From Macrostomum lignano (lineage: Eukaryota), in assembly GCA_002269645.1 (NCBI GenBank), contig NIVC01001344.1, positions 1 to 64,000 on the forward strand: a DNA stretch of 64,000 bases, read 5' to 3'. Shown in pieces: positions 4,405 through 63,932 of this stretch; the first letter of the stretch is position 1; each line of letters opens with the position of its first letter. Under the pieces are notes generated by a model. The model was not told the DNA's origin, did no database searches, and was given only the letters and a program-made list of their open reading frames with translations. The position numbers were made by a program, and so were the translations under genes.

Positions 4405-5065
4405 AGTTTCTATGCATTTTGGTGCCTATGCATTTTGGTGCCCTGCATTTTGGTGCCTCAGATTGCTTTTCAGCATCTTTATCTATAATGCAAAAATGAT
4501 AATAATAAAAAATCCTATAACAAACATAATGAATAATTTTTTAAATGTTTAATATTTTTAATAAGATTAGTATTTATTTTGATAAACTAGTATGTTTTTT
4601 TAGTTTTAAAAAATCCAATCAATTTAATTGCACACATTTGCTATATCATTTATACAAATATAAGGCTATACCTAGCAAGCATGCTATGAAGACTTAGTTA
4701 GGTAAAGATAAAATCTATTAATAATGCTACATGTAGTTTTGATTGAAATCCATATAACTTGTCTATTTTAGTATTGATTTTTTTAATCATATCTTTTTTT
4801 TAGAATTGAATGCAAGACTAGAGAAAAAATTAAATGAAATAAAACTATTTTTTTAATTAAAATACCAGGTCAGTTAACAAACTAAATAATACCTTCGTTT
4901 TTTAAAGTAAATAAGTACTGCAAAAGCAAAGCACTTATTGCTAAATTAGGGCTCACTGTCTATATTTTTGTGTCCAATTCTAAATTATAATTTAGGCACT
5001 AAAAAGCAAGCTGGGGTACTTAAACACTAGGCACCAAAAAGCACAAGCACCAAAATGTGGATACC
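4405..5065. mobile_element. Second, inverted and diverged copy of the 699-1563 MITE
   Basis: 4870-5065 is the reverse complement of ~700-900, and ~4670-4750 matches ~1200-1280. It ends ...GTGGATACC followed by TA. Confidence 0.75.
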
Positions 5066-6075
5066 TAGGCCCCTAGCTTAGCTAATTCTTTTCAAATGAT
5101 ATTACCTTTTATAGCTTCTAGATTGTAGTCTAGTCAATCTAGCAATAAGAGAATTTGGCAATATATTGATCAGGTAATAATCAAAGCAGCAATAGACAAT
5201 CTATAAGAGGTGTCTGGAAAGTAAGTAGTGTTACTTTTACTTGTAGCAAACGTTTGGTAAGTTGCATTGACATAAGTTTGGTATCGTTTGAAAGCAGCAT
5301 GCCTCTTCTTTAAAATGACTTAAACCAGGATTGATTTGGATTTGGATTTTAAGAGATATGTGCACTTAAGTAGAGGGATACATACTTTCTATGTAGTCTT
5401 TCTATATATATATTCTTATTTATGTATAAGTTGTATTTACTTAAGTAAGTCTTATAATTTATAGCAATATCACTGATTTGATTGAGGCTATTACTAACTA
5501 GTCTAAACCTTGTCATTGAAGTAGTTGTTACCAAAAATCTTTTTCAATAAGCTAACTAGTAATAACTTTTTTAAAAATATGACCTAAAAGCCTAATGCTT
5601 TGCAGGTAAATATAGAATAAGATTGTTACATGGGGCATCTAGAGCAATTCAAACTCTGGCTGCAATAGGGCTATTAGCTGCTTTGTTGCTTTGTTAGCTT
5701 AAAGGCCTAGATTTTCCTAAATATAGCCTATGTTCAATGGAAATTGCAATGAACACAATGAATTTAGAGAAATACTTGACATGTTACATTTTATATTGCA
5801 GCTTTTATTATCTATAATAAAGGTAAATAGCTGTCTTAGGCTAATGCAAGTTTATTAGTGTTAGCAATATCAGCTGTTTCATTAACAGCTTTATTGGCAG
5901 CTCTTCATCAACAGCTTTATTAGGAACTTTATCAATAGCTTTATAAAGCTACCCACTCAGGCCATCGACTTAACAATGATGTAAATAATTCACAAAAGCA
6001 CAAAAAATATAATTGAGCATAAACTCAAATAATAAAACATTGCATGTGCAGCCATTGTATTTATTTTCCTTTGGA

Positions 6076-20400: not shown

Positions 20401-21075
20401 AGCCTGTCAGTGACCACCGCCACTATCCCCCAGTCCATCAGTGGCAACTGCTACTATCCCCCAGTCCATCAGTGACAACTGCTACTATCCCCCAGTCCAT
20501 CAGTGACAACTGCTACTATCCCCCAGTCCATCAGTGGCAACTGCTACTATCCCCCAGCCTGTCAGTGACCACCGCCACTATCCCCTAGCCTGTCAGTGAC
20601 CACCGCCACTATTCCCCAGCCTGTCAGTGACCACCGCCACTATCCCCCAGCCTGTCAGTGACCACCGCCACTATCCCCCAGTCCATCAGTGACAACTGCT
20701 ACTATCCCCCAGTCCATCAGTGACAACTGCTGCTATCCCTTTGTCCATCAGTGGCAACTGCTACTATCCCCCAGTCCATCAGTGGCAACTGCTACTATCC
20801 CCCAGTCCATCAGTGGCAACTGCTACTATCCCCAGTCCATCAGTGGCAACTGCTACTATCCCCCAGTCCATCAGTGGCAACTGCTACTATCCCTTTGTCC
20901 ATCAGTGGCAACTGCTACTATCCCCCAGTCCATCAGTGACAACTGCTACTATCCCCCAGTCCATCAGTGGCAACTGCTACTATCCCCCAGTCCATCAGTG
21001 GCAACTGCTACTATCCCTTTGTCCATCAGTGGCAACTGCTACTATCCCCCAGCCTGTCAGTGACCGCCGCTGCTA
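17490..21075. repeat. ~3.6-kb 31-bp minisatellite (GTCAGTGACCACCGCCACTATCCCCCAGCCT, shifting to ATCAGTGRCAACTGCTACTATCCCCCAGTCC)
   Basis: Visible array of more than 100 units. The C-run varies between 4 and 5. Confidence 0.97.
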
Positions 21076-24825: not shown

Positions 24826-27988
<3,163 letters not shown>

Positions 27989-29944: not shown

Positions 29945-33011
<3,067 letters not shown>

Positions 33012-33480: not shown

Positions 33481-33959
33481 CATCTTAATCTGAGTGATAC
33501 CCATTTATCTATTAATGTAACTTGAATGGACAGTGGCTGCAGAACTCACACAGGAGCAATTTTAAACTCGCTTTTCAATCATTATACGTCGCTTTCTCTC
33601 CCCGTTACTGTCAGTAGCAAAGTGTGCGCTTGTACATCTTATAAAAGCAAATATAGGCCTATACGAGCTAGTAGTTTCCGAGAATTGTAATAATTATTTT
33701 AATGGTATATTTTCTGTTTTAATAAGATGATATATTTGGAAATTGGAATTAATCCAGTCGTGTTTATTTATATTACTTATATTTATATTGATGTATGATG
33801 TCTTCAACCTGTACAATAGTGAACATAGTGGTTATCAGGTATATCGATCAAGCTTTCCGTACATATCCCTATTTTTCTTAATTTGCTGTCGTAAAAATTC
33901 AACATCACAAAATAGCTTACTATACATGTTTTTCTAGCTATAATAATAATTCACTTTTA

Positions 33960-35475
33960 TTCGCTTGGTGGGGATTTTGTTAGCTTCGTGTGGATTTTAT
34001 TGGCTTGGTGGGGATTTATTTGGCTCAGTGAGGAATTTATTCGCTTGGTGGGGATTTTATTGGCTTGGTGGGGATTTTATTGGCTTGGTGGGGATTTATT
34101 TGGCTCAGTGAGGAATTTATTGGCTCAGTGAGGAATTTATTGGCTCAGTGAGGAATTTATTGGCTCAGTGAGGAATTTATTGGCTCAGTGAGGAATTTAT
34201 TAGCTCAGTGAGGAATTTATTGGCTCAGTGAGGAATTTATTGGCTCAGTGAGGAATTTATTGGCTCAGTGAGGAATTTATTGGCTTGGTGGGGATTTTAT
34301 TGGCTCAGTGGGGAATTTATTGGCTTGGTGGGGATTTATTTGGCTCAGTGAGGAATTTATTGGCTTGGTGGGGATTTTATTGGCTCAGTGGGGAATTTAT
34401 TGGCTTGGTGGGGATTTATTTGGCTCAGTGAGGAATTTATTGGCTTGGTGGGGATTTTATTGGCTCAGTGGGGAATTTATTGGCTTGGTGGGGATTTTAT
34501 TGGCTCAGTGAGGAATTTATTGGCTCAGTGAGGAATTTATTGGCTCAGTGAGGAATTTATTGGCTCAGTGAGGAATTTATTAGCTCAGTGAGGAATTTAT
34601 TCGCTTGGTGGGGATTTTATTGGCTTGGTGGGGATTTTATTGGCTTGGTGGGGATTTTATTGGCTCAGTGAGGAATTTATTGGCTCAGTGAGGAATTTTT
34701 TGGCTTGGTGGGGATTTTATTGGCTTGGTGGGGATTTTATTGGCTTAGTGAGGAATTTATTGGCTTGGTTGGGATTTTATTGGCTCAGTGAGGAATTTAT
34801 TGGCTCAGTGAGGAATTTATTGGCTCAGTGAGGAATTTATTGGCTCAGTGAGGAATTTATTGGCTCAGTGAGGAATTTATTGGCTCAGTGAGGAATTTAT
34901 TGGCTCAGTGAGGAATTTATTAGCTCAGTGAGGAATTTATTGGCTCAGTGAGGAATTTATTGGCTCAGTGAGGAATTTATTGGCTCAGTGAGGAATTTAT
35001 TGGCTCAGTGAGGAATTTATTGGCTTGGTGGGGATTTTATTGGTACAGTGAGGAATTTATTGGCTCAGTGAGGAATTTATTGGCTCAGTGAGGAATTTAT
35101 TGGCTTGGTGGGGATTTTATTGGCTCAGTGAGGAATTTATTGGCTCAGTGAGGAATTTATTGGCTCAGTGAGGAATTTATTGGCTCAGTGAGGAATTTAT
35201 TGGCTCAGTGAGGAATTTATTAGCTCAGTGAGGAATTTATTGGCTCAGTGAGGAATTTATTGGCTCAGTGAGGAATTTATTGGCTCAGTGAGGAATTTAT
35301 TGGCTCAGTGAGGAATTTATTGGCTCAGTGAGGAATTTATTGGCTCTGTGAGGAATTTATTGGCTTGGTGGGGATTTTATTGGTACAGTGAGGAATTTAT
35401 TGGCTTGGTGGGGATTTTATTGGTACAGTGGGGAATTTATTGGCTTGGTGGGGATTCTATTGGCTTAGTGAGGAT
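33960..35475. repeat. 20-bp minisatellite (TGGCTCAGTGAGGAATTTAT / TGGCTTGGTGGGGATTTTAT)
   Basis: Visible array with two interleaved variants. Confidence 0.97.
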
Positions 35476-35591
35476 TTTTGGTTGTTGATTGCGGTTTTCC
35501 CAAACAGAAAAAAATAAAATAAATGTTTAACCAATACGTGCTACTAAAGTGTGATTCTCTGAAATGTTCTCGTAAGTTATTTCTTTGCACT

Positions 35592-42836: not shown

Positions 42837-45800
42837 TCAGGCCTTGGCAATGCCGGGCAGCGCGGGGTGGCAGCTGCGCGCTGCTTCCAGCCTTCGAAGC
42901 TCGGCCTTGACGGCGGCTGCCTGCTCCCGGGTGAGACGGAACCGCGGCGGCTTGTACACGGATTTGTACACCGTGTCAAAGTCGCGCTCGCCGTCTGTTG
43001 GCGCCGCGGTGACCACCGGCTTAAACGAAACCGTCGGGGCCAGCGGCTTGGCGACGAAGCTGGACCGGGTCTCGGAATCGCCCTCCAACCTGTCGAACTT
43101 CGGCACATGATGATAGGCCAGGTGAAAATCACCGTGGCGCATCCGGGGGGACACCGGCTCCGCAGCTGCCCGGCGATAGGCCTCCGAGCTGGTGGTCTCT
43201 GAGGCGAACTTGCCTGCGAATCTGGTGCTGGCTTCCGGGGGCTTCACTCGCTCTCGGTAGGCCTCCCTGCCGAGGCGGTGGGTGACGGATATGCATGCTG
43301 AGGACCATGTGTCACAAACTGAGGACAATGTGTCACATGCATGCTGAGGACCATGTGTCACAAACTGAGGACAATGTGTCACAAACTAAAAACAACGTGT
43401 CCTAAACTGCAGACCAGAGGCCACAAACTGAGGATCAGTTGTAGAAATCAAATAACCAGGTGTCAAACTCAAATAACCAGGTGTCAGACTCAAATAACCA
43501 GGTGTCAAACTCAAATAACCAGGTGTCAGACTCAAATAACCAGGTGTCAGACTCAAATAACCAGGTGTCAAACTCAAATAACCTGATTTCAGACTCAAAT
43601 AACCTGGTGTCAGACTCAAATAACCTGGTGTCAGACTCAAATAACCAGGTGTCAGACTCAAATAACCAGGTGTCAGACTCAAATAACCTGGTGTCAAACT
43701 CAAATAACCTGATTTCAGACTCAAATAACCAGGTGTCAAACTCAAATAACCAGGTGTCAGACTCAAATAACCAGGTGTCAGACTCAAATAACCTGGTGTC
43801 AAACTCAAATAACCTGATTTCAGACTCAAATAACCAGGTGTCAAACTCAAATAACCAGGGGTCAGACTCAAATAACCAGGTGTCAAACTCAAATAACCAG
43901 GGGTCAGACTCAAATAACCAGGTGTCAAACTCAAATAACCAGGGGTCAGACTCAAATAACCAGGTGTCAAACTCAAATAACCAGGTGTCAGACTCAAATA
44001 ACCAGGTGTCAAACTCAAATAACCAGGGGTCAGACTCAAATAACCTGGTGTCAAAACCAAATAACCAGGTGTCAAATACAAAATGATTTTCCAAAAAAGA
44101 AGACCCATTCCCCCACCGCAGGTCCTTGGTTTGGTAGTCCAGATGGCTAGTCGACTCGCCCTCCATGCGGCCCTCTGGAGCTGTGTACTGACTCGGGTCC
44201 TTCTTGAAGCTGGCCGGCACGGGGTGATGAGTTACGTCGACACCGCGGAACTCATGACGCTGCTCCGTGTTCCAGTAACCGTTGCGATCGTATCTGCGAG
44301 GCGACGGGAGTAGCAGAGTGGAACCTCACCCCAACACTTCACAATTGACAACAGTATCTCATCCCGTAAAGATTAACGGACTCTATAATCTCACCCGCCT
44401 TTGAATGACGGAGTAAAAAAATTCACCCTATATATCAAGGGATATCATAAATCTCACCCGATAGATCAATAGGTCTCATAAATCTCACCCGATAGATCAA
44501 TAGGTCTCATAAATCTCACCCCATAGATCAATAGGTCTCATAAATCTCACCACCATAGATCAATGGATATCATAAATCTCACCCCATGGATCAATACGTC
44601 TCATAAATCCCACCCGATAGATCAATAGGTCTCATAAATCTCACCCCATAGATCAATAGGTCTCATAAATCTCACCCCCATAGATCAATGGATATCATAA
44701 ATCTCACCCCCATAGATCAATGGATATCATAAATCTCACCCCCATAGATCAATGGATATCATAAATCTCACCCCCATAGATCAATAGGTCTCATAAATCT
44801 CACCCCCATAGACCAATGGATATCATAAATCTCACCCCCATAGATCAATAGGTCTCATAAATCTCACCCCCATAGATAAATGGATATCATAAATCTCACC
44901 CCCATAGATCAATGGATATCATAAATCTCACCCCCATAGATCAATGGATATCATAAATCTCACCCCCATAGATCAATAGGTCTCATAAATCTCACCCCCA
45001 TAGACCAATGGATATCATAAATCTCACCCCCATAGATCAATAGGTCTCATAAATCTCACCCCCATAGATAAATGGATGTCATAAATCTCACCCCATAGAT
45101 CAATGGATATCATAAATCTCACCCCCATAGATCAATGGATATCATAAATCTCACCCCCATAGATCAATAGGTCTCATAAATCTCACCCCATAGATCAATA
45201 GCACTCATAAATCTCACCCATAGATCAATAGGTCTCATAAATCTCACCCCATAGATCAATAGGTCTCATAAATCTCACCCCCATAGATCAATAGTTCTTA
45301 TAAATCTCACCCCCATAGATCAATATGTCTCATAAATCTCACCCCCATAGATCAATGGATATCATAAATCTCACCCCCATAGATCAATATGTCTCATAAA
45401 TCTCACCCCCATAGATCAATAGTTCTCATAAATCTCACCCCCATAGATCAATGGATCTAATAAATCTCACCCCATAGATCAATCGTTCTCATAAATCTCA
45501 CCCCCATAGATCAATAGTTCTTATAAATCTCACCCCCATAGATCAATAGTTCTTATAAATCTCACCCCCATAGATGAATAGGTCTCATAAATCTCACCCC
45601 CATAGATCAATGGATATCATAAATCTCACCCCCATAGATCAATAGGTCTCATAAATCTCACCCCATAGATCAATAGGTCTCATAAATCTCACCCCCATAG
45701 ATCAATAGTTCTCATAAATCTCACCCCCATAGATGAATGGAAATCATAAATCTCACCCCATAGATCAATAGGTCTCATAAATCTCACCCCATAGATCAAT

Positions 45801-48429
45801 AGGTCTCATAAATCTCACCCCCATAGATCAATAGTTCTCATAAATCTCACCCCCATAGATGAATGGAAATCATAAATCTCACCCCATAGATCAATAGGTC
45901 TCATAAATCTCACCCCATAGATCAATAGGTCTCATAAATCTCACCCCCATAGATCAATAGTTCTCATAAATCTCACCCCCATAGATGAATGGAAATCATA
46001 AATCTCACCCCATAGATCAATAGGTCTCATAAATCTCACCCCATAGATCAATAGGTCTCATAAATCTCACCCCCATAGATCAATAGTTCTCATAAATCAC
46101 ACCCCCATAGATCAATAGTTCTTATAAATCTCACCCCCATAGATCAATAGGTCTCATAAATCTCACCCCCATAGATCAATGGATATCATAAATCTCACCC
46201 CCATAGATCAATAGGTCTCATAAATCTCACCCCATAGATCAATAGGTCTCATAAATCTCACCCCCATAGATCAATAGTTCTCATAAATCTCACCCCCATA
46301 GATGAATGGAAATCATAAATCTCACTCCATAGATCAATGGATATCATAAATCTCACAAAAACTTCGCCCAAATTTATCATCAAAATTGAATACATGCATA
46401 TCAAATTCTAATCTACTTAAAGGAGCCAGCTAAGATTTTTTCTCACTTCAAATCCACCATCGCTTCGGGAGGCTGGGACCTCTCCGACCGCTTGAACTGC
46501 CTGGTATCGTAGCCTTTGAAATCCGCCCTGGTCTGCGTCTCCGAGTGCATCGGCAGCTTGCGCTCCATCACCGCCTCGTTGCTCTGGCGGGCCGGTGGCG
46601 GCCGGCTCAGCCCAGGGGGCATCGGTCGGTAGGTGTCCCTGTTCACCGTGGTGAAGTCCTGGACACCGTCCAGTGCCAGATTGCCGACCGCCGGCACGGC
46701 CGGTATGGCAGGAACGCCGCGAGGACCTTCGAAGTAAAAGTGGGAGTCAAGTTAGCTCAGTAGACTCAGCACTGCCCCAGTAGCTTAAGGGTCTAGTGCT
46801 CAGTACTCAGTAGCCTAAGAGACGAGTGCTCAGAGTGTTCATCAGTAGCCTAACAGGCGAGTGCTCAGAGTGTTCAGTAGCCTAAGAAGCGACTGCTCAG
46901 AGTGCTCAGTAGCCTAAGAGGCGACTGCTCAGAGTGCCCAGTAGCCTAAGAGACGACTGCTCAGAGTGCCCAGTAGCCTAAGAGACGTGTTCTCAGAGTG
47001 CTCAGTAACCTCAGCACTGCCCCAGCCCCAGCTCTCACCCTTGTAAGTAGACTGGTTGACAGTCTCCAGCTCCCTGGCCCTGCCCGGGTTGAGCACCGAG
47101 CCCATAAATTCGGGCATCTCGCCGTAGCGAATCGGATTCCGGCCGGTGCTCCAGCCTTTGTAGTCGGCCATGCTGGTTGTCTGGCCTTGAAATTGGCCGT
47201 TTGCCACCAGCACCCTGCCGGCGCCGCCTCGGACAGCGTCCGGCTTGCGGTGCTCTACCGGGCCGAGCGGACGCTCTTTGTATTCGTCCTGAACAAAGAC
47301 GAGAGGGCGGCGGGAATGACAACGGAGTATTGAGACTGCAAATAACCCCCTATCACATCATTTATGGCTTTAACATCAGGAATAATAACTCTGAACCAGA
47401 CACCTGGAATTATCTGACTCAGACACCTGGAATTACCTGACTCAGACACCTGGAATTACTTGACTCAGACACCTGGAATTACCTGACTCAGACACCTGGA
47501 ATTATCTGACTCAGACACCTGGAATTACCTGACTCAGACACCTGGACTTACCTGACTCAGACACCTGGAACCACAAGACTCAGAGACCTGGAACAACCTG
47601 ACTCAGAGACCTGGAACCACAAGACTCAGAGATCTGAAATCACAAGACTCATAGACCTGAAACCACAAGACTCAGGGACCTGGAACTACAAGACTCAGAG
47701 ACGTGAAGCCACAAGACTCAGAGATCTGAAATCACAAGACTCATAGACCTGAAACCACAAGACTCAGAGACCTGAAACCACAAGACTTAGAGACGTGAAG
47801 CCACAAGACTCAGAGATCTGAAATCACAAGACTCATAGACCTGAAACCACAAGACTCAGGGACCTGGAACTACAAGACTCAGAGACCCGGAACCACCTGA
47901 CTCAGACAGCTGGAATCCCATGATCCAGCCTCCCAATTACCTGATACACGGTAGCCCGTTTGTCGCCCATCTGGTCACGCCACACCCAAGAAGGCCCGTC
48001 TCCGTCGCCTCCTTTCTTTTGCACCGGCTCGTTCCGAGCCGCCCTTAAGTCCTTGGGCACGAAGTCGGCCCGCTGCGAGGTGTCCCAGCTCATCGCCTGG
48101 CTCCGCTTGCCGCCGCCGCCGCCAGCCGGCGGTGGTCGCTTGCTAGACCGTTTCCGCAGCTCCTTGGCGATGTACGTGTCCTGATAGTGCGACTTGCCCA
48201 ATCGGCCCTTCGGACCGGCAGCTTCGGCAGCCGCCGCCGCAGCGGCCGCCTGCTCCTCGGCAACCAATCCAGGCGTCGGGATGTTGTACAATCCGTACAG
48301 CAGCTCGCGAGTTCGCTCAGGATGCGCCCGCATCAGCGCTTCGAGCTCAGAATCGATTACCGAACCGCGCGACACCGGCAGACTGGGCGGCGGCTGCCGC
48401 TGCGGCTGCGGAGCCGCTGTAGCTGGCAT
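42837..48429 (-). CDS. SAXO/FAM154-like stabilizer of axonemal microtubules, ~541 aa; exons 48429-47941, 47288-47039, 46726-46447, 44293-44117, 43266-42837
   Basis: All junctions are GT-AG with consistent phases (1626 nt). Repeated Mn-like motifs: DTSQRADF, TVYQDEY, QTTSMADY, DFTTVNRDTY, ETQTRADF, GESTSHLDY, ETTSSEAY, DFDTVYKSVY. Confidence 0.75.
43300..44085. repeat. 21-bp minisatellite (TCAAATAACCAGGTGTCAGAC) preceded by a short GAGGACCATGTGTCACAAACT repeat, SAXO-like intron 4
   Basis: Visible tandem arrays. Confidence 0.95.
44440..46360. repeat. 31-32-bp minisatellite (CATAAATCTCACCCCCATAGATCAATAGGTCT), SAXO-like intron 3
   Basis: Visible array of ~1.9 kb. Confidence 0.97.
46760..47015. 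repeat. 32-bp minisatellite (AGTAGCCTAAGAGACGACTGCTCAGAGTGCTC), SAXO-like intron 2
   Basis: About 7 copies. Confidence 0.9.
47390..47905. repeat. 23-bp minisatellite (GACTCAGACACCTGGAATTACCT, grading to GACTCAGAGACCTGAAACCACAA), SAXO-like intron 1
   Basis: Visible tandem array. Confidence 0.93.
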
Positions 48430-48613
48430 GTCTGGCTAAGTTCTGCTTTCGCTGATGTCTTCTGCCACTAACAGATGTTGTAAGCAGCTAGTGTAGTCTA
48501 TAGTCTTTAGTAATTATACTATAACTTTTAGACACGGCAGATTCAGATGGTAATAAAGTATTAGAGAAGACTCCAAGAGAGAGAGAGAGATAAAAACGTT
48601 GCTATTGACAACA

Positions 48614-49051
48614 AAACGTTAGTCGAGGCGAGAGGGAGAGAGAGAAGAGATGGCTAGGTAGCGAGTCTCTCTGTACGAGTCTGCTCTGGCCCATGGTTGG
48701 CTGCCTGAGATTAGCTGCTCGCTGTCGGGGGAAGGGGGGCTGGCAGGACTGAGAGGCTGACTAGACGGACAATACAATTTGGCAGGTGGATTTGAGCTGC
48801 TGGTTGAGCAGTCGAGATGAGGTGGCCCAGCTACGCAAGATTTTGCGGCGGGCGAGAGGGAGAGGGAGAGAGAAGAAAGGAAATAGAAAAAGAGCGGAGC
48901 ACAGAAAAATTAAAGGGTTCAGCTTTGTAGTGCGTCTAAAAAACTGCCACAGAATCTGCTGAAGAAGTGCCGCAGCCTTTACTTATGTTTTCGGCCTATA
49001 TGATTTACGGATTTAACCACAACAAAATTAGATGCTCACACAGAAACGTTT
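48614..49051. repeat. 438-bp direct repeat, left copy (putative target-site duplication)
   Basis: I found no differences from 54206-54643 on line-by-line comparison (offset 5592). Confidence 0.95.
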
Positions 49052-49147
49052 TACTTAACTTAACTTAGCTGCAGGGCTGTCCCGGAGGGGACACAGCGGG
49101 AAGGCGCGGGCGCCCATTCCGCTAGTCCCTGAACGGCCGACGCGTCG

Positions 49148-52100
49148 CTATGGACGGAGGGTTGGCGCCGCCCAGGGAGGTCCCCCAGTGTCGCCAGCAG
49201 CTATGGTGCTCTCTGGAAAGGAGAGTTCAGCCCTGCGGGTGGCCCGAAGGTAGCGCATGAGCTGATTAAAGTTTTCGGGTTTGCACGCTTCAGTAATAGA
49301 TGTGTGTGGCCCGAGGTAAGTGAGTCTGGCCCGCGTGAAGGCGGGACAGATGCTGACGAAATGCTCAGCGGTTTCGTCACCTGAGTTGCAGAAACTACAG
49401 GTGGCGTTGGTGGCGTTGCCCTGCAGGTACTGGTGCCTGGAGAAGCAGCCGTGACCAGAGAGGGTCATGGTGGCAGCCCGGATGTCTCTGCGCGAGAGGC
49501 GCAAGAGGAGCTTCCGGAGCTGGTGAGAGGGCTGAGGGACAGCGCCTCTGGATTGCCTGCAGTTCGTGCGGTTCGCCCAAGTCGAGCGGTGCTGAGTCCT
49601 GATCCACGCTTTGATGCGCGAGTCGATGACACAGCCAGGAATCGGGACAAGAGGTTCGGGGCCGAGAGAGGAGCCGGAGGCACCAACTTTTGCAAGGGTG
49701 TCAGCCAACTCATTTCCTCGGATCCCCACATGCCCCGGAACCCACTTAAGGGTAATTTTGTTGGCGGAACCCAACACATTGAGGAGTTTGATACAGTCAA
49801 GGACTGTAGCAGAGTTGGTGCTGCAGCCACTGATGGCGTGCAAGGCAGCTTGGCTGTCCGAATGGAAAATGATGTTCTTACCAGTAACGCCAGTGGCGAG
49901 AAGCTCTGCAGTGCAGGAGCTGATGGCCAGAACTTCATTTTGGAAAACACTGGAGTTGACCCCAGTGTATTGAGCGTGGGTAGCGATGACCCTCCCGTTC
50001 AGAAAGATTCCAACACCAAAGCCGGTGTTGGCTGACTGCTTAGAACCGTCGGTGTAGCAATGAAGCTCACCAGGGTTCCAATGGTCATTGATGTTATCGC
50101 GCGAGTCGATAGCTACGGAGTAGCGCTGTCTCAGGTTGAGCGTTGAGGCAATGCCATCGGTGAAGACGCGATTGGCCTGACACTCGTTGAGAAAGTTGAG
50201 GCACAGATCGCTATGCGGGACAAGGTTCCGCTTAGCAGGTGCTCTCATGTAAATGAATTTGACGCCGGCATCAATTAGACGCCGCGTCGTTCTAGCCGCC
50301 TCACCCCTGATGAAGAGGTCAAGAGGCGGAAGATTAAGAAAGGCCCCCATGCCAGCAAAGGGCGTGGACCTGGTGGCGTTGCAGATGAGCCTACACGCTC
50401 TGCCTTGGATCGTGTTGAGCAGGTCTGCATGGCTTTTGACCTGGGTAGCGCTAACCCAGACAACAGAGGCGTACGTAATGGCAGGTCTAACTACGGAAGT
50501 ATAGATCCACCAAAGCCGCTTTGGGGATAGACCCCAAGAAGTGCCAAGTGCTCGTCGGAGCTGGGCCAGGATGGCTGAGGCACGCTTAGCTTTTGCTTTC
50601 ACGTGGAAGGACCAGTTGAGCCGGTGGTCAAGTGTGACCCCGAGACATCTGGTCTGGTGCGCGAAGGCAATATCTCTGCCGTAGAGCTGCAGAGGACGTA
50701 TGTTCCAGCGTAGTCTGCTGGTAAACATAATGGCAACGGTTTTGGGCTCAGAGAGTTCCAAACCATTGTCATTGGCCCAGGATTCTGCTTTGCGGATAAA
50801 GCTCTGCATCAGATCCCTGAGCGTGCTGGGAGACGGTCCTGCCACAATGGCCGTGACGTCATCAGCATACCCGACTTTGAAGACGGGGTCAGGTCGGGAG
50901 TCACTCAGAAGAGCGTCCATGACCAGGTTCCAGAGCGTCGGGGTGAGGACTCCGCCTTGGGGTCCACCCTTACAGACTCTGGTGGAGGCAGTTTGCCCAA
51001 GAAGTTGGGCAGTGACCGTACGGTTGGAGATCATGTACATGATCCACCGTATGAGGGTAGCATGAGCTTTGCGATTTTGAAGGGCCCTCTGAAACGCTTC
51101 AAAGATAACGTTGTCGAAGGCGCCAACAATGTCAAGAAAGAGAGCCAGGGCGTAACCGTCACCCAGTACCGCCCGTTCAATCTTTTCGACAATCGCATGC
51201 AGGGCGCTGTCAGTCGACCTCCCGGTACGGAAGGCGTGCTGATTATTGCTGAGGGGCATCGCTGTCAGCTCGCAGGAGAGCAGCCGCCAGAGAATAAGCC
51301 TCTCAGTGAGCTTAAGCATTGCTGACGTTAAGCTAATTGGCCGGAAGGCCTTGACGCTTTGGTAGTCACCCTTCCCAGGTTTGGGAATAAAGACTACTCG
51401 AGCTTCAGTCCAGCTTTTGGGAACGTATCCCAGCTGGATAGAGGCCCGCATAAGATTGCGGGTGAGTCTCAGGAACGAGGGTATCTTGGCTGCTTCACGA
51501 AGGAGAACAGGGTAGATACCATCAGGTCCAGGAGATTTGAAGGGTTTGAAGGTTCTGACCGCACGAGCGATTAGGTCTTCAGTGACAATGCCCGCCGCTA
51601 GGGTGGCTCCATCCATCGAATGGTTGGGCTCCGGTCTAGCAGTAGGTACCCTCGGAAGAATGTGCTAAGCATATGCTGAAGCACTTCTTCAGGGTCTTTA
51701 GTAAGAGAGCCATCATCTTTTTTATCATGGCTAATTTGGACATTTTGTCCATTGTAAGGGCCTTGACAAGCCTAGAAGTAGGTCTGTCTTGATCCAATTC
51801 ATTGCAGAATTGGCGCCACTTACATTCCTTGGCCTTGCGCACTTCAGATTTGAAATTGCGGGAGGCTTGCCGGAAAAGCTCCATGTCCTCCGGGTTTCCG
51901 GTCTTCATGGCACGGCGATGAAGGCTTTTGGCCTTCCGCCTGAGTTTCCCCAGCTCCGGGTTCCACCACGGCGCCGAGGTCTTGCCTTTGTAGGCGCGAG
52001 CAGGACAAGCCGCTTCGTAGGCTTTAATAATGCAACCTGTCAGCGTCTCAGCCATATGATCCACATCCTCGCAGGTCTCAATCGGACGTAAGTCCGTGAG

Positions 52101-52885
52101 TTCCTGCAGGTGCAGATCAAGGGCAGCCTTGTAGGCCGCCCAATCAGTGTTGCGGATATTGCGTCTCCAAGTGATCGGAGACTGGGTTTTAGTGTCCGCG
52201 ATATTAAAGGCGATAAAGCAGTGGTCAGACAGGGAGGGCTCCTCAGACCAGACTCTCCACTCCTTGACTCTGTCAAAGAGTCTTGGGGTAACGAGTGTGG
52301 CGTCGAGGACCTCGGTCCATCTGCCATTATTAAAGGTAGGAGTGCTGCCGCGGTTGCAGAGCATGAGGTTTGTGTTAGAGATGAGGGCCAGAAGCTCCTC
52401 TCCTCTAGTGTTGGTATCTTTGCTGCCCCAGTGCTTGTGGTGCGCGTTGAGGTCGCCCCCTAAGCACAGCTCAGCGTTCTGGGACTCGCAGTACTGCGCA
52501 AGGCGCAGTAAACTCTCGGAGCAGGGTCTCTGTCGCCTGGGATATAAACCGAGGCAACAAGACACGTACGCGGAGAGAAATGATTAGATTGGATGACGCA
52601 AAGGTCTCCATCAGAGAGATCAGTCCTCAGCCAAGCCTGGAGATGGCTAGCAGCGAGGATAGCCGCTCTAGGGCGGCTGTTCCCCGGGCCACACACATAA
52701 AAATCAGAGTAGCCAGAGGGAATGTTGGGCAACTTACCGTTGCGCATCCAGGGTTCCTGGATCAGGATGAGGCCTGGCCTGTACAGCTCAGCAATCTTCA
52801 TCAGATTTACTGACGCAGATACGCAATGCTGTAAATTTATTTGCAGACAGAATGTCGCTCCTTTGGCAGCGTGGAGCTTAGTCAT
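49148..52885 (-). CDS. ORF2: APE endonuclease + reverse transcriptase + RNase H + CCHC knuckle (~1246 aa after repairing three 1-nt deletions)
   Basis: QINLQH, LIQEPW, GGDLNAHHKHWGS and SDH (APE); KSPGPDGI, PQGGVLTPTLWN and YADD (RT); YTDGSK, NE, SDSQAAL and WVPGHVGIRGNELAD (RNase H); CSFC..ETAEHF..C. Frames change near 52520, 51715 and 51655. Confidence 0.92.
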
Positions 52886-52924
52886 ACTGTATTAAATGCA
52901 ATATCTGGCTAGAGCCCAGGGCCA

Positions 52925-54193
52925 TCAAGGAGACTTGGACAACAGATCGTCCTCGTCCCAGGCCGCTGGGGCTTGACTGGGAGATGGGAGTTGGTCGACG
53001 TCCATGGCCTCCTCACCCCCACCGGCCCCCCCAGCAGAGTCCTCAGGCTCCGATGACAGGATGGAGGAAGCTTCCTCACCTGCATCTTTACCTTCAGACC
53101 CCACCAAGGTGGCCGAGGAGAGCTCGGATTCCGAAGACCCGGCCTCGTCCTCAACTCCTTCTCCGACTGGCAGGTTTGGTTCCCGGGGCTCGGCCGGAGC
53201 CGTTACCGCGGTCGCCGAACTGCTGCTAGCAGAGGGGCGAGATGCAGCTTTGGCTTTGGGATCGGCTTGCGCCTTTCCTTGGGCCTTAGACTGCGCCCCG
53301 CTCTTGCCGGAGATGCCGGGGTTGGCAGTAGCCTTCCCTTTGGCAGACTTTCCTCGGCGCAACTTGAGCTTGAGGGCACCCAGCTGGAAAGAGGATCCAT
53401 TAGGGTACCGACTCGCCCAAGTGCTGGAAAGGCCGAGGACAATTGAGTTGCCCGTCTCCCCCCTGCGGACTTTGCGGTGATACACCAGTCCACTAGCAGG
53501 GAGGTCGGGGTTCAGACGCAGTAGGACCCGGCGAATAACGTCTGGTCCAGCTGCGGTGCTCTTAGCAGGGACAAAAACCACATAGGGTATCGTCTTTGGA
53601 CGCTGGCCCTCGCGAAGAAAGAGAGCTCCACCAAGGTCAGCATCCAAGGAGACCGTCGGTAGCCGCTGGAGCAGCCGCCGAGCGTCCTCCTCGCTGCTAG
53701 GAGCAATAAGAACGAATGTGCTTCGCAGCACCATCCGCTCAACGCCGATGGAGATTCCCTCCTCGACAGTCAGCTCAATCAGATAGGAGTCAACAGCACT
53801 CCACACTTTTTGAAGCTGATCAGTGGTCCAGTCCTGGTCGCGACCTTGGATGATCACTCCCGGGATTTTGGCCTTGGCCTTCGCCGCAAAGGTAGCTCCC
53901 GAAGGAACCTCCTTGTTGGCAGTGGCCATTTGTTGCGCCGTGGTTTCGGCCTCAGCAGCCGCGGCAGCAGCTCCAGGGAGCGCCGCCGCTGAACTACTGG
54001 AGCTTCTACCGGCCGGCCCGCCTGGTTGCCTTGGGACTCCAGTCGCTTCAGCATCCATGGTGGACGCCGCCGCTTTGGCCCCCGCAGCTCCCTTCTTGGC
54101 CTGCCTTTTGGCGCGTTGTTTAGCGCGTTTGCGCTCAAGCCGAGCCCGCTGAGCTTCATCGGATCTGCCAGATTTGGCCGGTCCTTTAGGCTT
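52925..54193 (-). CDS. ORF1 (gag-like; central region resembles the DUF4780-type ORF1 of Loa elements), N-terminally truncated; first remaining ATG at 54058
   Basis: 377 aa from 54058. Upstream in-frame KPKGPAKSGRSDEAQRARLERKRAK.. runs to the junction with no stop. The domain assignment is from memory. Confidence 0.7.
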   Translation of the reverse strand, partial: KPKGPAKSGRSDEAQRARLERKRAKQRAKRQAKKGAAGAKAAASTMDAEATGVPRQPGGPAGRSSSSSAAALPGAAAAAAEAETTAQQMATANKEVPSGATFAAKAKAKIPGVIIQGRDQDWTTDQLQKVWSAVDSYLIELTVEEGISIGVERMVLRSTFVLIAPSSEEDARRLLQRLPTVSLDADLGGALFLREGQRPKTIPYVVFVPAKSTAAGPDVIRRVLLRLNPDLPASGLVYHRKVRRGETGNSIVLGLSSTWASRYPNGSSFQLGALKLKLRRGKSAKGKATANPGISGKSGAQSKAQGKAQADPKAKAASRPSASSSSATAVTAPAEPREPNLPVGEGVEDEAGSSESELSSATLVGSEGKDAGEEASSILSSEPEDSAGGAGGGEEAMDVDQLPSPSQAPAAWDEDDLLSKSP

Positions 54194-54205
54194 ACGTTAG
54201 TCGTT

Positions 54206-54643
54206 AAACGTTAGTCGAGGCGAGAGGGAGAGAGAGAAGAGATGGCTAGGTAGCGAGTCTCTCTGTACGAGTCTGCTCTGGCCCATGGTTGGCTGCCTGA
54301 GATTAGCTGCTCGCTGTCGGGGGAAGGGGGGCTGGCAGGACTGAGAGGCTGACTAGACGGACAATACAATTTGGCAGGTGGATTTGAGCTGCTGGTTGAG
54401 CAGTCGAGATGAGGTGGCCCAGCTACGCAAGATTTTGCGGCGGGCGAGAGGGAGAGGGAGAGAGAAGAAAGGAAATAGAAAAAGAGCGGAGCACAGAAAA
54501 ATTAAAGGGTTCAGCTTTGTAGTGCGTCTAAAAAACTGCCACAGAATCTGCTGAAGAAGTGCCGCAGCCTTTACTTATGTTTTCGGCCTATATGATTTAC
54601 GGATTTAACCACAACAAAATTAGATGCTCACACAGAAACGTTT
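54206..54643. repeat. 438-bp direct repeat, right copy
   Basis: Identical to 48614-49051. Confidence 0.95.
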
Positions 54644-54854
54644 ACTTATCAATATTTCTCATATGAATAACAGCATTAGTATGCACTGTATCGCGCATTA
54701 AGGGCACAATTTAACAAGACAACTATGTAAAACAATTTGGTAAATATTACGAGTAATACTCGAGTACCTTCAAATTTCAATCATTTAATTACAAGTCGAA
54801 AGTAATTGCGTATCTAATTGCTTTACACAAATTTCCGAACTTTCTCACTTCATT

Positions 54855-55285
54855 AACCCACACCTGATTAACCACACCTGATTAACCCACACCTGATTAA
54901 CCACACCTGATTAACCCATACCTGATTAGCCCACACCTGATTAATCCACATCTAATTAACCCACACCTGATTAACCCACACCTGATTAACCCACACCTGA
55001 TTAACCCACACCTGATTAACCCACACCTGATTAACCCACACCTGATTAACCTACACCTGATTAACCCACACCTGATTAACCCACACCTGATTAACCTACA
55101 CCTGATTAACCCACACCTGATTAACCCACACCTGTTTAACCCACACCTGATTAATCCACATCTGATTAATCCACACCTGATTAACCCATACCTGATTAAC
55201 CACACCTGATTAACCACACCTGATTAACCACACCTGATTAACCCACACCTGATTAACCCACACCTGATTAACTCACACCTGACAA
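54855..55285. repeat. 15-bp minisatellite (ACCCACACCTGATTA)
   Basis: Visible tandem array. Confidence 0.95.
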
Positions 55286-55646: not shown

Positions 55647-58600
55647 TCACACAGTTTTACAGCAGGTACTTTTCTCTGGCGGAGGCACCGGCTTGTGCAA
55701 CTGGATGCTGGCAGTGCGGTCCGCTGTCAGGTGCTGCCTCAGCCGCTGCTGCTCCTGCGGCTGTTGTTGCTTTTGTTGTTTCTGCTGCTGCTTTGTCTTT
55801 TGCTTTGGCTGCTTTTTCTTCTTGGCAAGGGCAGCGGATGCCAGCACGGCGCCGCCGACTCCCGCACTGGCTCCGTCGGATGTTTGCAGCAGGGGTGCAG
55901 AAAGCAACGGCTGAATATTGGGGAGAAACAAATAGTGCTGATTTCGGACCTGTGCTCAAGCTGTTACGAGCTGCCCAGCAAAAAATTTTAGCAACGTCAT
56001 CATTACAGGTTCAGCTGCTTAAGAGCTCTCTCTCGACTGGTTAGTGCTCATGCTGACACGCAGGTGCTAGGGGGGCCACAGCCTAACCCCCATCGGCTGG
56101 AAAATGTATATGGCGCCCCCTTACAGTAACGCTCAGGTGCCCCTGGTGTTGGCACCCCTGGTGCTAAAGCGCCTGGTGCTAAAGCCCCTGGTGCTAAAGC
56201 CCCTGGTGTTAAAGCCTCTGGTGCTAAAGCCCCTGGTGCTGGCGCCCCTGGTGCTGGCGCCCCTGGTGCTGGCGCCCCTGGTGCTAAAGCGCCTGGTGCT
56301 AAAGCCTCTGGTGCTAAAGCCTCTGGTGCTAAAGCCCCTGATGCTAAAGCCCCTGGTGCTAAAGCCTCTGGTGCTAATGCCTCTGGTGCTGGCGCCCCTG
56401 GTGCTAAAGCCCTTGGTGCTGGCGCCCCTGGTGCTAAAGCCCCTGGTGCTAAAGCCCCTGGTGCTAAAGCCCCTGGTGCTAAAGCCCCTGGTGCTGGCGC
56501 CTTACTTCTGTGCCGTGTAACAGCGTGGGTCAATCTGCATGTATGAGGAAGGGGTTGGCTGCAGCTGAGTGCCTACAATATACTAGCCAATAATATCTGT
56601 AGGCCTCACCTTCCAGGTAGAGAACATGGCAGCGGCGATAGCAGCAAACAGCTCATGAACATTCTCCCCAGTTTTTGAGCTGGTCTCAAAGAAATCGTAG
56701 GCGCTGCAGCTTAGATGGGCCTGATCACGATTTTAGATGGAGGGGGCTATTATTTTGAAAACAGGTCAAAACAAATTAAATAAATAATTGTCTAGGGGGC
56801 TACAGTAATTAGTGCAATTATTTTGTTCATATGTACGTCTTACACACAAACACATTTTAGAGATTAGACGTTCGAATGGAATATATACATTTATGTACAT
56901 TCTCAAGGTAATGTTAGAAAATTACCTTATTCGTTAAGCTAATGCTGGGAAGCTTATAGTTTATAAGGCAGAAAATAGCCAATGGATGAGTGAGCCATAG
57001 TGCATGCATTGAGTCTACATTGTAAACTGAGAATGTCCCAGTGAGCACTAACTGAAGCAAAAATTACAGGCAAACAGTAATATGAACATTGATCAAACAC
57101 GGGAAGCGGTGCCACTGTTAACAGCTGCAGTTTTCACAGCATGCATAGGCCCTCTGAGCACTTTCCATCAGAGTATTTTGTTCACTTCCGAAGGAAGCTT
57201 CACCCTTCACCCAATCACCCATTCACCTTCACCCATGGTTACCCAATGCGACAGCAGCTTCACCCATGGTTACCCAATGTGACAGATGCTTCACCCATGG
57301 TTACCCAATGTGATAGAAGCTTCACCCATGGTTACCCAATGTGACAGAAGCCTCACCCATGGTTACCCAATGTGACAGAAGCTTCACCCATGGTTACCCA
57401 ATGTGACAGAAGCTTCACCCATGGTTACCCAATGTGACAGAAGCCTCACCCATGGTTACCCAATGTGACAGAAGCTTCACCCATGGTTACCCAATGTGAC
57501 AGAAGCTTCACCCATGGTTACCCAATGTAACAGATGCTTCACCCATGGTTACCCAATGCGACAGATGCTTCACCCATGGTTACCCAATGCGACAGAAGCT
57601 CCACCCATGGTTACTCAATGCGACCGAAGCTTCACCCATGGTTACCCAATGCGACAGCAGCTTCACCCATGGTTACCCAATGCGACAGAAGCTTCACCCA
57701 TGGTTACCCAATGCGACAGCAGCCTCACCCATGGTTACCCAATGTGACAGAAGCCTCACCCATGGTTACCCAATGTGACAGAAGCCTCACCCATGGTTAC
57801 CCAATGCGACAGCAGCCTCACCCATGGTTACCCAATGTGACAGATGCTTCAACAATTTTTATGAACCGTGACAGACGCTTCACCCATTGTTTCAGCAGGC
57901 GTCACACACTACAAGAGTACATCGAAGCACCTGACAGCGGTACAGCTTACAATTATCTCACCTGGATGCCTTCGGCATGGGTCACCTGACGCCGACTCGC
58001 CAGATCAAGTTTATTGCCCGCCAGGAACACCGGAATCAGGTGGTCCTCGCCAGCATGCTGCGGGGTCCGTTTTAGACGGCTTCAAATCATCATCAAATAG
58101 GCGCACAAATACTACTTTTTTGCGCATATAAGTAGTATGAGAATATTAGCATTTATCTAGACTTTAATCTACATGTAGCATCCTACCTCGCTGATGCTGC
58201 GCAACCAGTAGCTTTTGGTTCGCTCAAACGACTGCCGATCGGTGATGTCGTAGATGAGCAGGATGCCCTGGTCCGTGCAGGTGATATTGTTGTGTTGCGA
58301 TTTTATTCAACAATGCCTTGCGGCTGTTCAGTCCAAGGACTGGGGGGTCGCCACACAGCCTCAATTACCCCAGCTAATGCTGGCACCCATTTTACAGCTC
58401 AGGGGTGAACTGAAGCAATGCAGAGTTACGTGTCAAGTGCTCAAGGAGATAAATTGTTCCAAGTGGGTCAAGATTCGAACACCCGACTTTTCAGTCGTGA
58501 GTCCGACGCTCTAACCACTAGGCTAGAACCCCATGCATGGGGTTAACAAAAACTATTTCTAATTCATGAGGATCTGCAACATCAAGCAACCGTAACTCAC

Positions 58601-61667: not shown

Positions 61668-63932
61668 TGCCATAGACTACATTTAAGCCCGCTTGCAGGA
61701 GTCACACCTACTTTAATGCAAATTAGCGGGCAGTTAAGAATCAGATTAAACATGCCTTTTGAGGGAGTTATTTATATAAATCACGAGGGCCGAAGGCAAA
61801 AATTAGCGGGCAGTTAAGAATCAGATTAAACATGCCTTTTGAGGGATTTATGAAAATAACTCCCGAAGAAGGCATGTTTTATCTCATATAAACCATAGAT
61901 AAACTCCGGGATAATGTTAGATAATATCCCGGAGTTATAATATAATCCTGCAAATACAAAAAAGAAGTGTCTATGGCCAAAATGCCTACTAACTGAGAGG
62001 TGGGGTCGAGGGGGCGATGAGCCCCCCGCGGGGGTGTGGGGGCAGAGCCCCCACGTAAACAAACACTTATAATTAATTGTCTATGGTCTAAAGTGATGTA
62101 TGTTCTTAAGAGCTACACGTCGGGAGATCAGGTCTGACTTTCATTTAAGTTTCGACAGTTCATTCATTTATTACAGAGTCTATCGAAAAGCTTTTCGATG
62201 CGTCGAATTCTTAATCCACTCGTCGACTATTCAAAAGATTTTATTGGCAACTTCGATCCAAACGTCCTACCGCTCGATTTCGTAAAGTCACGCGCTGGTG
62301 GAGATTTTCAAGATCATCAGTGGCTGGCGGCTGAGATGAAAAGATATGAAGAAGAAGTGGAGTTGGAAGATTTATACGAGATAGAGACGTTTGAGACACC
62401 ACTGTTGGATGGTGGCGGTCGTTTTGCTATAGTCGACAGTGTTGCCGCGCTGAACGAGTCTGTCCGTCCAAAGGGCACAATCAATCGGAACAACTGGGCC
62501 CTGCGAATTTTCCAGGCATGGGTGAGCTCTCGTGTCAGTGAGATCGGCATGAAGCCCATCACCGAGTTCAGCTGTGAGGAAATCAATACGATTCTCGGTC
62601 GCTTCATCCACGAGGTGCGAAAGGTCAACGGCGAGCGTTATCCTAGAGGGTCATTAGTATCGATAGCCGCTGGACTTAATTCGGCCATTCGAGAGGTCCA
62701 GCCGACAGTAGATCTGTTCAAGTCAATGGAACTACGGCCATTCAGGGACTTGTTGGACGCTGCCATGAAACTGTCAACCGCCGCTGGTACTTCACTCAAC
62801 AGTAAGCCAGCTGGGATTTTAAGTGTTTCTGACGAAGAAAAAATATGGCAGTCTGGAGTCCTCGGCTTGGATAATCCTGATCAGCTGACCAAGACGCTCT
62901 TTTTTCTCAATGGACTCCACTTTGCTCTACGTGGAGGTGAGGAGCATTCGAATCTGATGCTTTCCCAGATAACAATTGAAATACGCGACAACGAAGAGTG
63001 TCTTATTTACCGAGAAGCCTCATCAAAGACCTACCATGGCGGCTTGAATGACAAACGTCGCAAACAAGTGGAGCGGTTGTACGTCCCTTCTCACGCTAGA
63101 TCCGTCTGTCATCTACAAGCGTTCAAGACTTATCTAAAGGTGCGTCCCCCAGATGCTACACGATTCTACCTCCAATCGGCCAAAAAGTGGGATAGCGGTG
63201 CGGCGTGGTATTGTAACAGACCGATTGGCAAAAACTACATGTGCAAAATGATGGCTACGATCACCGAGGATGCTGGCGTGCCCAAGCTGACAAACCACAG
63301 CCTGAGGGCAACATGTGCGACGCGTCTCTTTCAAGCTGGTGTGGACGAGCAGCTTATAATGGAGCGTACGGGCCATCGCAGTGTCGACGGCGTACTTGCG
63401 TACAAGCGAACACCTACGAACCTAATCAAGTCGTCTAGTCTGGTGGTCGATGGCAGGCCGATTCAAGAAGCCACGACCTCATCTGGTGCATCTGGAAGTG
63501 GTGGCCACAGCTTCGTATTCAACAACTGTTCCGTTGTTCAAAACATTTGTACGATGGGTACCTGTAGTCGACCTGATGGATTGCTATAAATCGTTAGCTG
63601 TACGTAACAAACTGAAATAATATGCGAACATACTGGTGAAAACTGTTTTGACCATTGCAATGATCTGTTAAATTCAATTTTTTATCATATTGCATGTTTA
63701 GTGTCTATGGTCAGAATCAACTGACTGAAGAAATATACCGACAAATAAAATTTCGGAAAAACTAAGATTATCAAGTCGAAAGATTAGAAAGTTGCGTTAT
63801 CTATGGTTTATTGACATTTAACGCCCGATTGTCTATTTCAAACTTACTCTAATGCAAATTAGCGGGCAGTTAATATCATTAACTGCCCGCTAATTTTGTC
63901 CCACTTTGTCAAGGACACAAATGTCTATGGCA
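61668..63932 (+). mobile_element. Crypton-like tyrosine recombinase DNA transposon with inverted terminal motifs
   Basis: Contains the YR ORF. TGCCATAGAC (61668) and GTCTATGGCA (63923) are inverted, as is subterminal AAATTAGCGGGCAGTTAA (61720 and ~63880). The boundaries are inferred from these motifs. Confidence 0.65.
62198..63589 (+). CDS. Crypton-type tyrosine recombinase (DUF3504/ZMYM-QRICH1-KCTD1-related), 463 aa, intronless
   Basis: RFIHEVRKVNGERYP..SL, FALRGGEEH, SKTYHGG, PIGKN, TNHSLRATCATRLFQAG..IMERTGHRS..LAYKR. The catalytic R-K-H-R-H-Y set appears intact. Confidence 0.9.
   Translation: MRRILNPLVDYSKDFIGNFDPNVLPLDFVKSRAGGDFQDHQWLAAEMKRYEEEVELEDLYEIETFETPLLDGGGRFAIVDSVAALNESVRPKGTINRNNWALRIFQAWVSSRVSEIGMKPITEFSCEEINTILGRFIHEVRKVNGERYPRGSLVSIAAGLNSAIREVQPTVDLFKSMELRPFRDLLDAAMKLSTAAGTSLNSKPAGILSVSDEEKIWQSGVLGLDNPDQLTKTLFFLNGLHFALRGGEEHSNLMLSQITIEIRDNEECLIYREASSKTYHGGLNDKRRKQVERLYVPSHARSVCHLQAFKTYLKVRPPDATRFYLQSAKKWDSGAAWYCNRPIGKNYMCKMMATITEDAGVPKLTNHSLRATCATRLFQAGVDEQLIMERTGHRSVDGVLAYKRTPTNLIKSSSLVVDGRPIQEATTSSGASGSGGHSFVFNNCSVVQNICTMGTCSRPDGLL

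Follow-up and report, generated by a model that had tools for sequence, protein, structure and literature searches.

Several clades of long interspersed elements (LINEs, the non-long terminal repeat or non-LTR retrotransposons) in the I group, namely I, Nimb, LOA, R1, Tad1 and Ingi, combine an APE-type endonuclease with a ribonuclease H (RNase H) domain, and the Drosophila I factor terminates at its 3′ end in (TAA)n. LINEs specific for repeated targets include R1 and R2 in ribosomal DNA (rDNA), TRAS and SART in telomeric repeats and Tx1L in the Tx1D transposon. Here we analyse 64,000 nt of the flatworm Macrostomum lignano (contig NIVC01001344.1 of assembly GCA_002269645.1, positions 1 to 64,000; hereafter, the window), where an RNase H-bearing LINE lies between two identical 438-bp direct repeats that most likely represent a giant target-site duplication (TSD) left by target-primed reverse transcription (TPRT).

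In human L1, TSDs longer than 100 bp were found in up to 10% of HeLa insertions, and in cells deficient in nucleotide excision repair the median TSD reached ~1.5 kb, with a maximum of 5.9 kb (PMC5223499). Large L1 TSDs are associated with 5′-truncated insertions (PMC2912911), and tandem duplications of 1–10 kb with an L1 at the junction are also regarded as 'large TSDs' (bioRxiv 10.1101/2024.12.14.628481). The original prediction for this locus took LINE TSDs to be limited to ~5–20 bp, and it overstated the novelty of the case because L1 TSDs from more than 100 bp to 5.9 kb were already documented (PMC5223499; bioRxiv 10.1101/2024.12.14.628481).

A LINE between two identical direct repeats

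The two direct copies, at 48614–49051 and 54206–54643, match at 438 of 438 positions, and the 5,154 bp between them (49052–54205) hold a minus-strand LINE with ORF1, ORF2 (ORF, open reading frame) and a (TAAGT)3 tail. Both the repeat around a 5.15-kb element and the presence of an APE–RT–RNase H LINE (RT, reverse transcriptase) with its tail at the 3′ junction had been predicted, and were borne out by the sequence and by Pfam. In the orientation of the element, the locus reads as follows.

54206–54648, minus strand: putative upstream TSD copy in element orientation, exact part 54206–54643 (438-nt identity, with gapped extension to 443/444 nt)
54193–54205, minus strand: 13-nt junction filler, AACGACTAACGTA (read from the sequence)
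54059–54192, minus strand: truncated 5′ leader in open frame with ORF1, with a basic stretch, KPKGPAKSGRSDEAQRARLERKRAKQRAKRQAKK... (translation; longer frames in the gene models P0014 and P0123)
52925–54058, minus strand: ORF1, 377 aa from its ATG, intact (translation; matches to M. lignano models and to the relative L001)
49148–52885, minus strand: ORF2, ATG at 52885 and stop at 49148 (Pfam, tblastn and alignment)
~52843–52212, minus strand: APE domain of ORF2 (Pfam Exo_endo_phos_2, 2.8e-20; Exo_endo_phos, 2e-07)
~51388–50633, minus strand: RT domain of ORF2, downstream of APE (Pfam RVT_1, 5.2e-28)
~50065–49679, minus strand: RNase H domain of ORF2 (Pfam RNase_H, 6.9e-11; residues 534–662 of the RT fragment)
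~49399–49346, minus strand: C-terminal CCHC of ORF2 (C756, C759, H768 and C773, invariant in the alignment of relatives)
49147–49068, minus strand: 3′ untranslated region (UTR), 80 nt (read from the sequence)
49067–49053, minus strand: tail, (TAAGT)3 (read from the sequence)
49052, minus strand: one extra A after the tail (read from the sequence)
48614–49051, minus strand: putative downstream TSD copy, 438 bp exact (exact identity and gapped alignment)

With RNase H placed C-terminal to RT and followed by the CCHC, the domain order of ORF2 is APE–RT–RNase H–CCHC, and the ORF2 region was collinear in tblastn comparisons with the 1,232-aa ORF2 proteins P0001 and P0002. Judged from its domains, the insert is an APE-type, RNase H-bearing LINE. 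Pfam searches of the internal ORFs returned only APE, RT and RNase H, and no integrase, protease or GIY-YIG domain; ORF1 contains neither a Pfam domain nor cysteine knuckles. An Rfam scan of 46–57 kb produced nothing credible, and no second copy of the LINE was found in the window.

Both ends of the LINE

At its 3′ end, the LINE reads ...CCCTGCAGC(TAAGT)3-A, with the 438-mer starting directly afterwards. The closest relative represented by DNA, the Logan contig L001 (ORF2 59% identical; ORF1 core 39% identical, with a longer N-terminus that does not align to ORF1 here), shares a 38-nt block of the 3′ UTR and the terminal CCCTGCAGCTAAGT and then diverges into an unrelated flank; no part of it matches the 438-mer, and no TSD was found in it. 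Metagenomic relatives with 30–43% identity regularly carry a short tandem tail ~80–100 nt after ORF2, with units of 3–6 nt, such as (TAAGG)n, (TAAAGG)n, (GAAGA)n, (AAG)n or (AATC)n, and their flank usually opens with a partial tail unit. The 3′ end of L001 and the short tandem tails of the relatives therefore place the end of the LINE at (TAAGT)n.

At the 5′ end, the leader (...SEPKGPAKSGRSDEAQRARLERKRAK...) is also present in the M. lignano models P0014 and P0123, inside longer open frames. These models (87–98% aa identity) continue for at least 49–57 codons upstream of 54192 with a sequence common to both, DRPALLADPNRLIQLWQR.DRLALLADPTR..., which matches no part of the window, including the 438-mer. 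Homology to the models begins only at ~54192, where they read SEPKGPAKSG and the copy here reads *RKPKGPAKSG, and a stop codon (54199–54197) falls within the 5′ junction. Since the longer 5′ sequence of P0014 and P0123 is missing from the window, the copy is, by comparison with these models, 5′-truncated at ~54192, having lost upstream open-frame leader and not the ATG-defined ORF1. The 5′ junction had been predicted to cut ORF1 in mid-frame; the truncation held, whereas the cut in ORF1 did not, because the 377-aa frame is intact and only the open-frame leader is lost. The junction filler contains a 10-nt copy, CGACTAACGT, of target sequence whose end is 3 nt before the junction.

Because the 3′ end of L001 and the 5′ extensions of P0014 and P0123 lack the 438-mer, the repeat is, as far as these one DNA relative and two protein-level copies extend, not part of the LINE.

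Limits and composition of the repeat

Immediately outside both copies identity falls to background (14–40% per 50 nt). A gapped alignment lengthens the pair to 48614–49057 and 54206–54648 (444 columns, 99.8% identity), with a single indel in a T3/T4 run (a T/A run) at the repeat edge, and the bases gained by this extension are ACTTA, that is, one TAAGT tail unit on the element strand. This TAAGT (54648–54644) precedes the exact upstream copy and matches the tail unit of the LINE. The AAA/AAAA difference at the edge may be a consensus error of the same kind as the ORF2 frameshifts described below. In element orientation, the allele is thus laid out as ...GA–TAAGT–(438)–filler–(truncated LINE...(TAAGT)3–A)–(438)–TGTTGTCAATAGC....

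The 438-mer runs from AAACG to CGTTT, and the unit begins and ends with the heptamer AAACGTT. No third copy was found in the window, six-frame translations had no match in the protein database, and the outer flanks (...GACAACA and ACTTATC) have no short TSD in common. The complete absence of substitutions between the copies bears on the age of the insertion.

ORF2 is divided into four pieces by three 1-nt frameshifts, located with tblastn (using P0001, P0002 and P0004) at ~52514, 51720 and 51658. At the base level these are 1-nt homopolymer contractions, CC(C)GAG, A6G(G) and TTCC(C)GAG; each piece stays open through the shifts, and P0004, another copy of the family, is in frame at 51720 and 51658. 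Because the flanking repeat has no substitutions, the three frameshifts are probably long-read consensus errors rather than decay. Published M. lignano assemblies were built with PacBio reads and Canu (PMC5730564), and, given the probable residual long-read error at the ORF2 homopolymers, indels elsewhere in the assembly deserve caution. A repeat without substitutions, an intact ORF1 and an ORF2 whose defects are only homopolymer contractions fit a very recent insertion.

Family copies and distant relatives

Fragments of ORF1 and ORF2 are 87–100% identical to the M. lignano UniRef models P0003, P0004, P0014, P0121, P0122 and P0123, with ORF1 98% identical to parts of P0121 and P0122; these identities by themselves assign the window to M. 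lignano or a very near relative. On the evidence of these models, the LINE family has further copies in the M. lignano genome; several are fused in the gene models to unrelated host genes (ABC transporter, UBC9, GPCR, annexin). The best named matches to the LINE proteins are uncharacterised proteins of M. lignano, Seison and insects. Look-ups of the exact ORF1 and RT ORF proteins in public assemblies returned no other contig, and a metagenome scan with a single protein returned no relative; a scan with an alignment recovered 80 loci, all distant (29–43% aa identity) and mostly with short flanks.

Among 81 related loci, mostly with short flanks, not one has long flanking repeats or terminal direct repeats. 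Two full-length distant metagenomic relatives, L070 and L039, have ordinary TSDs of 13 bp (4275–4287 and 9217–9229) and 11 bp (157–167 and ~5113–5123), respectively, so that the duplication examined here is ~35 times longer than in relatives and lies outside the ~10–15 bp typical of the group. These data, drawn from relatives outside the family itself, offer no evidence that the family routinely makes very long duplications, as had been suggested. L070 and L039 have a common conserved 5′ end, CC(C)G.GGCTTGA.TGGCTAC...GGTGGCGGATAGCC, and AACAT opens both of their TSDs, a hint of target preference within their subgroup.

Other observations concern individual relatives. A 10-bp candidate TSD in L009 resembling the target here (TAAGTAAAC) was rejected, since its upstream match lies inside ORF2. 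The contig L010 carries a 127-bp, 100% identical direct repeat (3061–3187 and 9297–9423) whose second copy ends at the contig end, which points to LINE copies in tandem or to a metagenome contig circularised or collapsed in assembly. In L044, the 3′ tail at ~7395 is (CCTAA)3, the complement of the telomeric TTAGG unit, and this element may be a telomere-repeat-associated member of the group.

An inverted repeat at the breakpoints

Each breakpoint lies within one arm of an imperfect inverted repeat of 18 nt, which reads AACGTTT|ACTTATCAATA on the bottom strand and AACGTTT|TGTTGTCAATA on the top strand. A motif search placed the arms as follows.

54637–54654, plus strand: inverted-repeat arm, AACGTTT-NN-TT-N-TCAATA, then TT; putative first-nick (bottom-strand) site
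48603–48620, minus strand: the other inverted-repeat arm, then GC; putative second-break (top-strand) site

The arms agree at 15 of 18 bases and have TA as the outermost two bases on each; the motif has no other match in the window. Compared with random position pairs 438 bp apart, this symmetry has p ~4e-4 with the register fixed and 4.5e-3 when it may slip by ±5 nt; an unconstrained local alignment gave p = 0.013, on the exactly symmetric diagonal. We consider the significance of the inverted repeat moderate. No terminal inverted repeat longer than 18 nt was found at the repeat boundaries, and AAAACGTT is present a third time at ~48589–48596.

The tail microhomology suggests a first nick after ACTTA, in which case the positions of the two cuts in the motif would differ by 5 nt. 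With a first nick before ACTTA, the cuts would be symmetric, and the extra A could be explained by pairing of a short A-tail with a TTT primer. As a lead only, the duplication might have copied the core of a ~456-bp unit resembling a miniature inverted-repeat transposable element (MITE).

A probable giant duplication from a single TPRT event

We consider it probable that the repeat is a TSD of ~438–444 bp, which a young APE-type LINE with RNase H left behind in one TPRT event. The exact duplication abuts both ends of the element, with the tail on one side and the truncated 5′ end with its filler on the other, and the target TAAGT directly upstream of the upstream copy means that the duplication takes in one tail unit, bar the 1-nt homopolymer difference. 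A TAAGT at the target is the expected microhomology between primer and tail, as seen in relatives, with a chance of ~1/1000 per register. A giant TSD, with a second-strand break ~438 bp away and a very recent date, had been put forward from the sequence alone and is still the best reading of the repeat.

On this anatomy, with both element ends located and the repeat distinct from the element, we infer the following order of events and the kind of enzyme or DNA end behind the distant second break. The element endonuclease would nick the bottom strand at ...AAACGTTT(ACTTA)^, and the 3′ end thus freed would pair with the (UAAGU)n tail of the RNA, to which it is complementary, and prime cDNA synthesis. 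The top strand would be broken, or an existing 3′ end used, ~438–444 bp downstream instead of ~10–15 bp. The cDNA would stop before the 5′ end of the RNA, with a 5′ truncation of at least ~150–170 nt, and its end would be connected to the distant top-strand end by a microhomology, template-switch or alternative end-joining type of join, leaving the 13-nt filler, 10 nt of which are a second copy of the target end. Once both long single strands had been filled in, the identical 438-bp repeats (443/444 bp with TAAGT) would be complete. Candidate sources of the distant top-strand end are a second cut by the element endonuclease, a host nick, an Okazaki or replication end, and break-induced replication (BIR) on the intact strand, the last of which has been proposed for L1 (bioRxiv 10.1101/2024.12.14.628481). 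The empty site is predicted to read ...ATATTGATAAGTAAA(A)CGTTTCTG...CCTCGACTAACGTTTTGTTGTCAATAGC..., with a single 438-bp copy.

Several points weigh against a giant TSD. The duplication comes from one assembled allele, and the simplest priming model does not explain the extra A at 49052, which would have to be a consensus error in a homopolymer or a base added without a template. A 440-bp duplex would also have to be separated or bypassed, which calls for a helicase, replication or BIR-type step that leaves no visible trace in the sequence. Finally, with an inverted repeat at both breakpoints, the positions of the breaks may not be random, a feature that the plain model does not predict. One extension of the model, which we think unlikely, is that the length of the duplication was set by sequence, with the element endonuclease or a structure-specific host nuclease cutting both arms of the inverted repeat on opposite strands. 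Were this so, and were the ~456-bp unit a repeated family preferred by the LINE, 'TSDs' of unit length would be made regularly, and finding the 438-mer around another family member elsewhere would not refute TPRT.

Alternative explanations for the repeat

A direct repeat does flank a retroelement here, and some retroelements carry such repeats, including the pseudo-LTRs (pLTRs) of Penelope-like elements and the perfect non-terminal repeats (PNTRs) of TART. Nevertheless, the 438 bp are almost certainly not element-encoded, be it as the LTR-like ends that the original prediction had allowed for, as the repeated 5′ UTR of a head-to-tail LINE tandem or as pseudo-LTRs. The 438-mer is absent both from the 3′ end of L001, which stops at TAAGT and continues into an unrelated flank, and from the 5′ extensions of the same-family copies P0014 and P0123, whose sequence is unrelated to it. 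In addition, the tail lies inside and not outside the downstream copy, there are no TG...CA termini, no room for a primer-binding site (PBS) or polypurine tract (PPT) and no short TSD outside, and the lack of integrase, protease and GIY-YIG domains is matched by the lack of terminal repeats in all 81 related loci.

An earlier, perfect tandem duplication of a 438/443-bp unit, with the LINE later entering the TAAGT at the junction with a near-zero TSD, would produce the same arrangement. The unit edges carry the same heptamer, AAACGTT, a microhomology typical of such junctions, TAAGT at the junction would be a natural priming site, and the genome is very rich in tandem repeats, with minisatellite arrays covering ~29% of the window and simple and tandem repeats making up 15% of the genome (PMC5730564). 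However, this would take two independent recent events with both LINE joins falling exactly on the junction (~1 in several hundred for an insertion landing anywhere within the duplicated region), the arrays in the window consist of many copies of 15–42-bp units and not of 2 × 440 bp, and a single TPRT event accounts for everything; we therefore regard a prior tandem duplication as improbable. We likewise give little credence to an assembly artefact, in which haplotypes or paralogues of a polyploid, repeat-rich genome were joined into a chimera or two different nearby insertion alleles were merged through their shared LINE. Probable consensus errors are present (the three ORF2 homopolymer contractions), and M. 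lignano DV1 has extra chromosome copies, with 180–312 Mb of duplicated assembly (PMC5730564). Yet both junctions are specific novel joins with hallmarks of TPRT, which assemblers do not invent, the entire structure spans 6 kb, well inside single long reads, and the two-allele form needs two insertions of one family in the same orientation 438 bp apart.

A 5′ or 3′ transduction was also considered as an origin for the repeat and rejected, as the tail separates the LINE from the downstream copy, beyond which there is no further tail.

Other features of the window

The window contains 24 minisatellite arrays between 6767 and 60606, amounting to ~18.7 kb (29% of the window), with units of 15–42 bp that differ in nearly every array. 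Arrays are found on both sides of the LINE locus, at 47397–47917 and 54852–55282. Other examples are listed here.

17492–21070: minisatellite array
44419–46356: minisatellite array
6767–8764: minisatellite array
33956–35478: minisatellite array

A single-exon ORF of 278 aa (27152–27988, plus strand) gave an almost end-to-end match to the WDR5 beta-propeller (E 9e-175), and starts ~50 bp past a minisatellite with a 28-bp unit (25750–27101) that is crossed by long spurious ORFs. Another ORF, of 463 aa (62198–63589, plus strand), has QRICH1, DUF3504 and phage-integrase (tyrosine recombinase) domains and may be a Crypton-type or domesticated tyrosine-recombinase gene. The ORF at 15452–16168 (plus strand) contains a SAM (sterile alpha motif) domain and is probably a host-gene exon.

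Two further repeats were observed. At least five copies of a dispersed repeat of ~150–290 bp, in both orientations and 84–97% identical (10450–10739, 13835–14254, 32549–32738 and 58321–58527), may constitute a family resembling short interspersed elements (SINEs) or MITEs, unrelated to the 438-mer. An inverted-repeat pair at 698–1562 and 4406–5066, consisting of pieces of ~230–370 bp that are 76–85% identical and ~3–4 kb apart, may represent the ends of a DNA transposon or of a foldback element.

Significance and comparison with known systems

The giant TSD proposed here would be a natural, assembly-level duplication of several hundred base pairs left by a flatworm LINE that carries RNase H and is not an L1, and would extend TPRT with a distant second break, so far seen mainly in human cultured cells and tumours, to recent insertions in an invertebrate genome. 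Structures of this kind mimic LTR elements, and tools of the LTRharvest type could mis-call them; LTRharvest was used on the M. lignano genome with a minimum LTR of 100 bp (PMC5730564). Large duplications are also substrates for recombination able to delete the insertion, and they duplicate host sequence. With tail-unit microhomology on the 3′ side and a templated filler on the 5′ side, the clean junctions of this locus make it a useful specimen for models of second-strand synthesis.

Compared with LINEs of the I group, the element is alike in having two ORFs, an ORF2 with APE, RT, RNase H and CCHC in that order and a 3′ end made of a short tandem repeat, whereas its ORF1 lacks zinc knuckles and any Pfam domain and its TSD is ~35 times the 11–13 bp of its relatives. 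As with target-specific LINEs, the target starts with a full tail unit and the breakpoints lie in a repeated (inverted) 18-nt motif; unlike them, nothing indicates a target common to other copies, the 3′ flank of L001 being unrelated and the family copies in fused models adjoining unrelated host genes.

The closest parallel is with the large-TSD events of human L1 in cell culture and tumours, which likewise combine a 5′-truncated LINE, a 3′ tail at the nick site, hundreds of duplicated base pairs, a distant downstream second break or primer and a 5′ join with microhomology or filler. Unlike human L1, the LINE here carries RNase H, has a pentanucleotide-repeat tail in place of poly(A) and resides in a flatworm; the insertion is an assembled genomic allele, germline or not, instead of an event in cultured cells or a tumour, and both of its breakpoints lie in short inverted-repeat arms. 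A large TSD as an outcome of TPRT is already known for L1, so that this case would add a different LINE group and a different phylum, and not a new mechanism.

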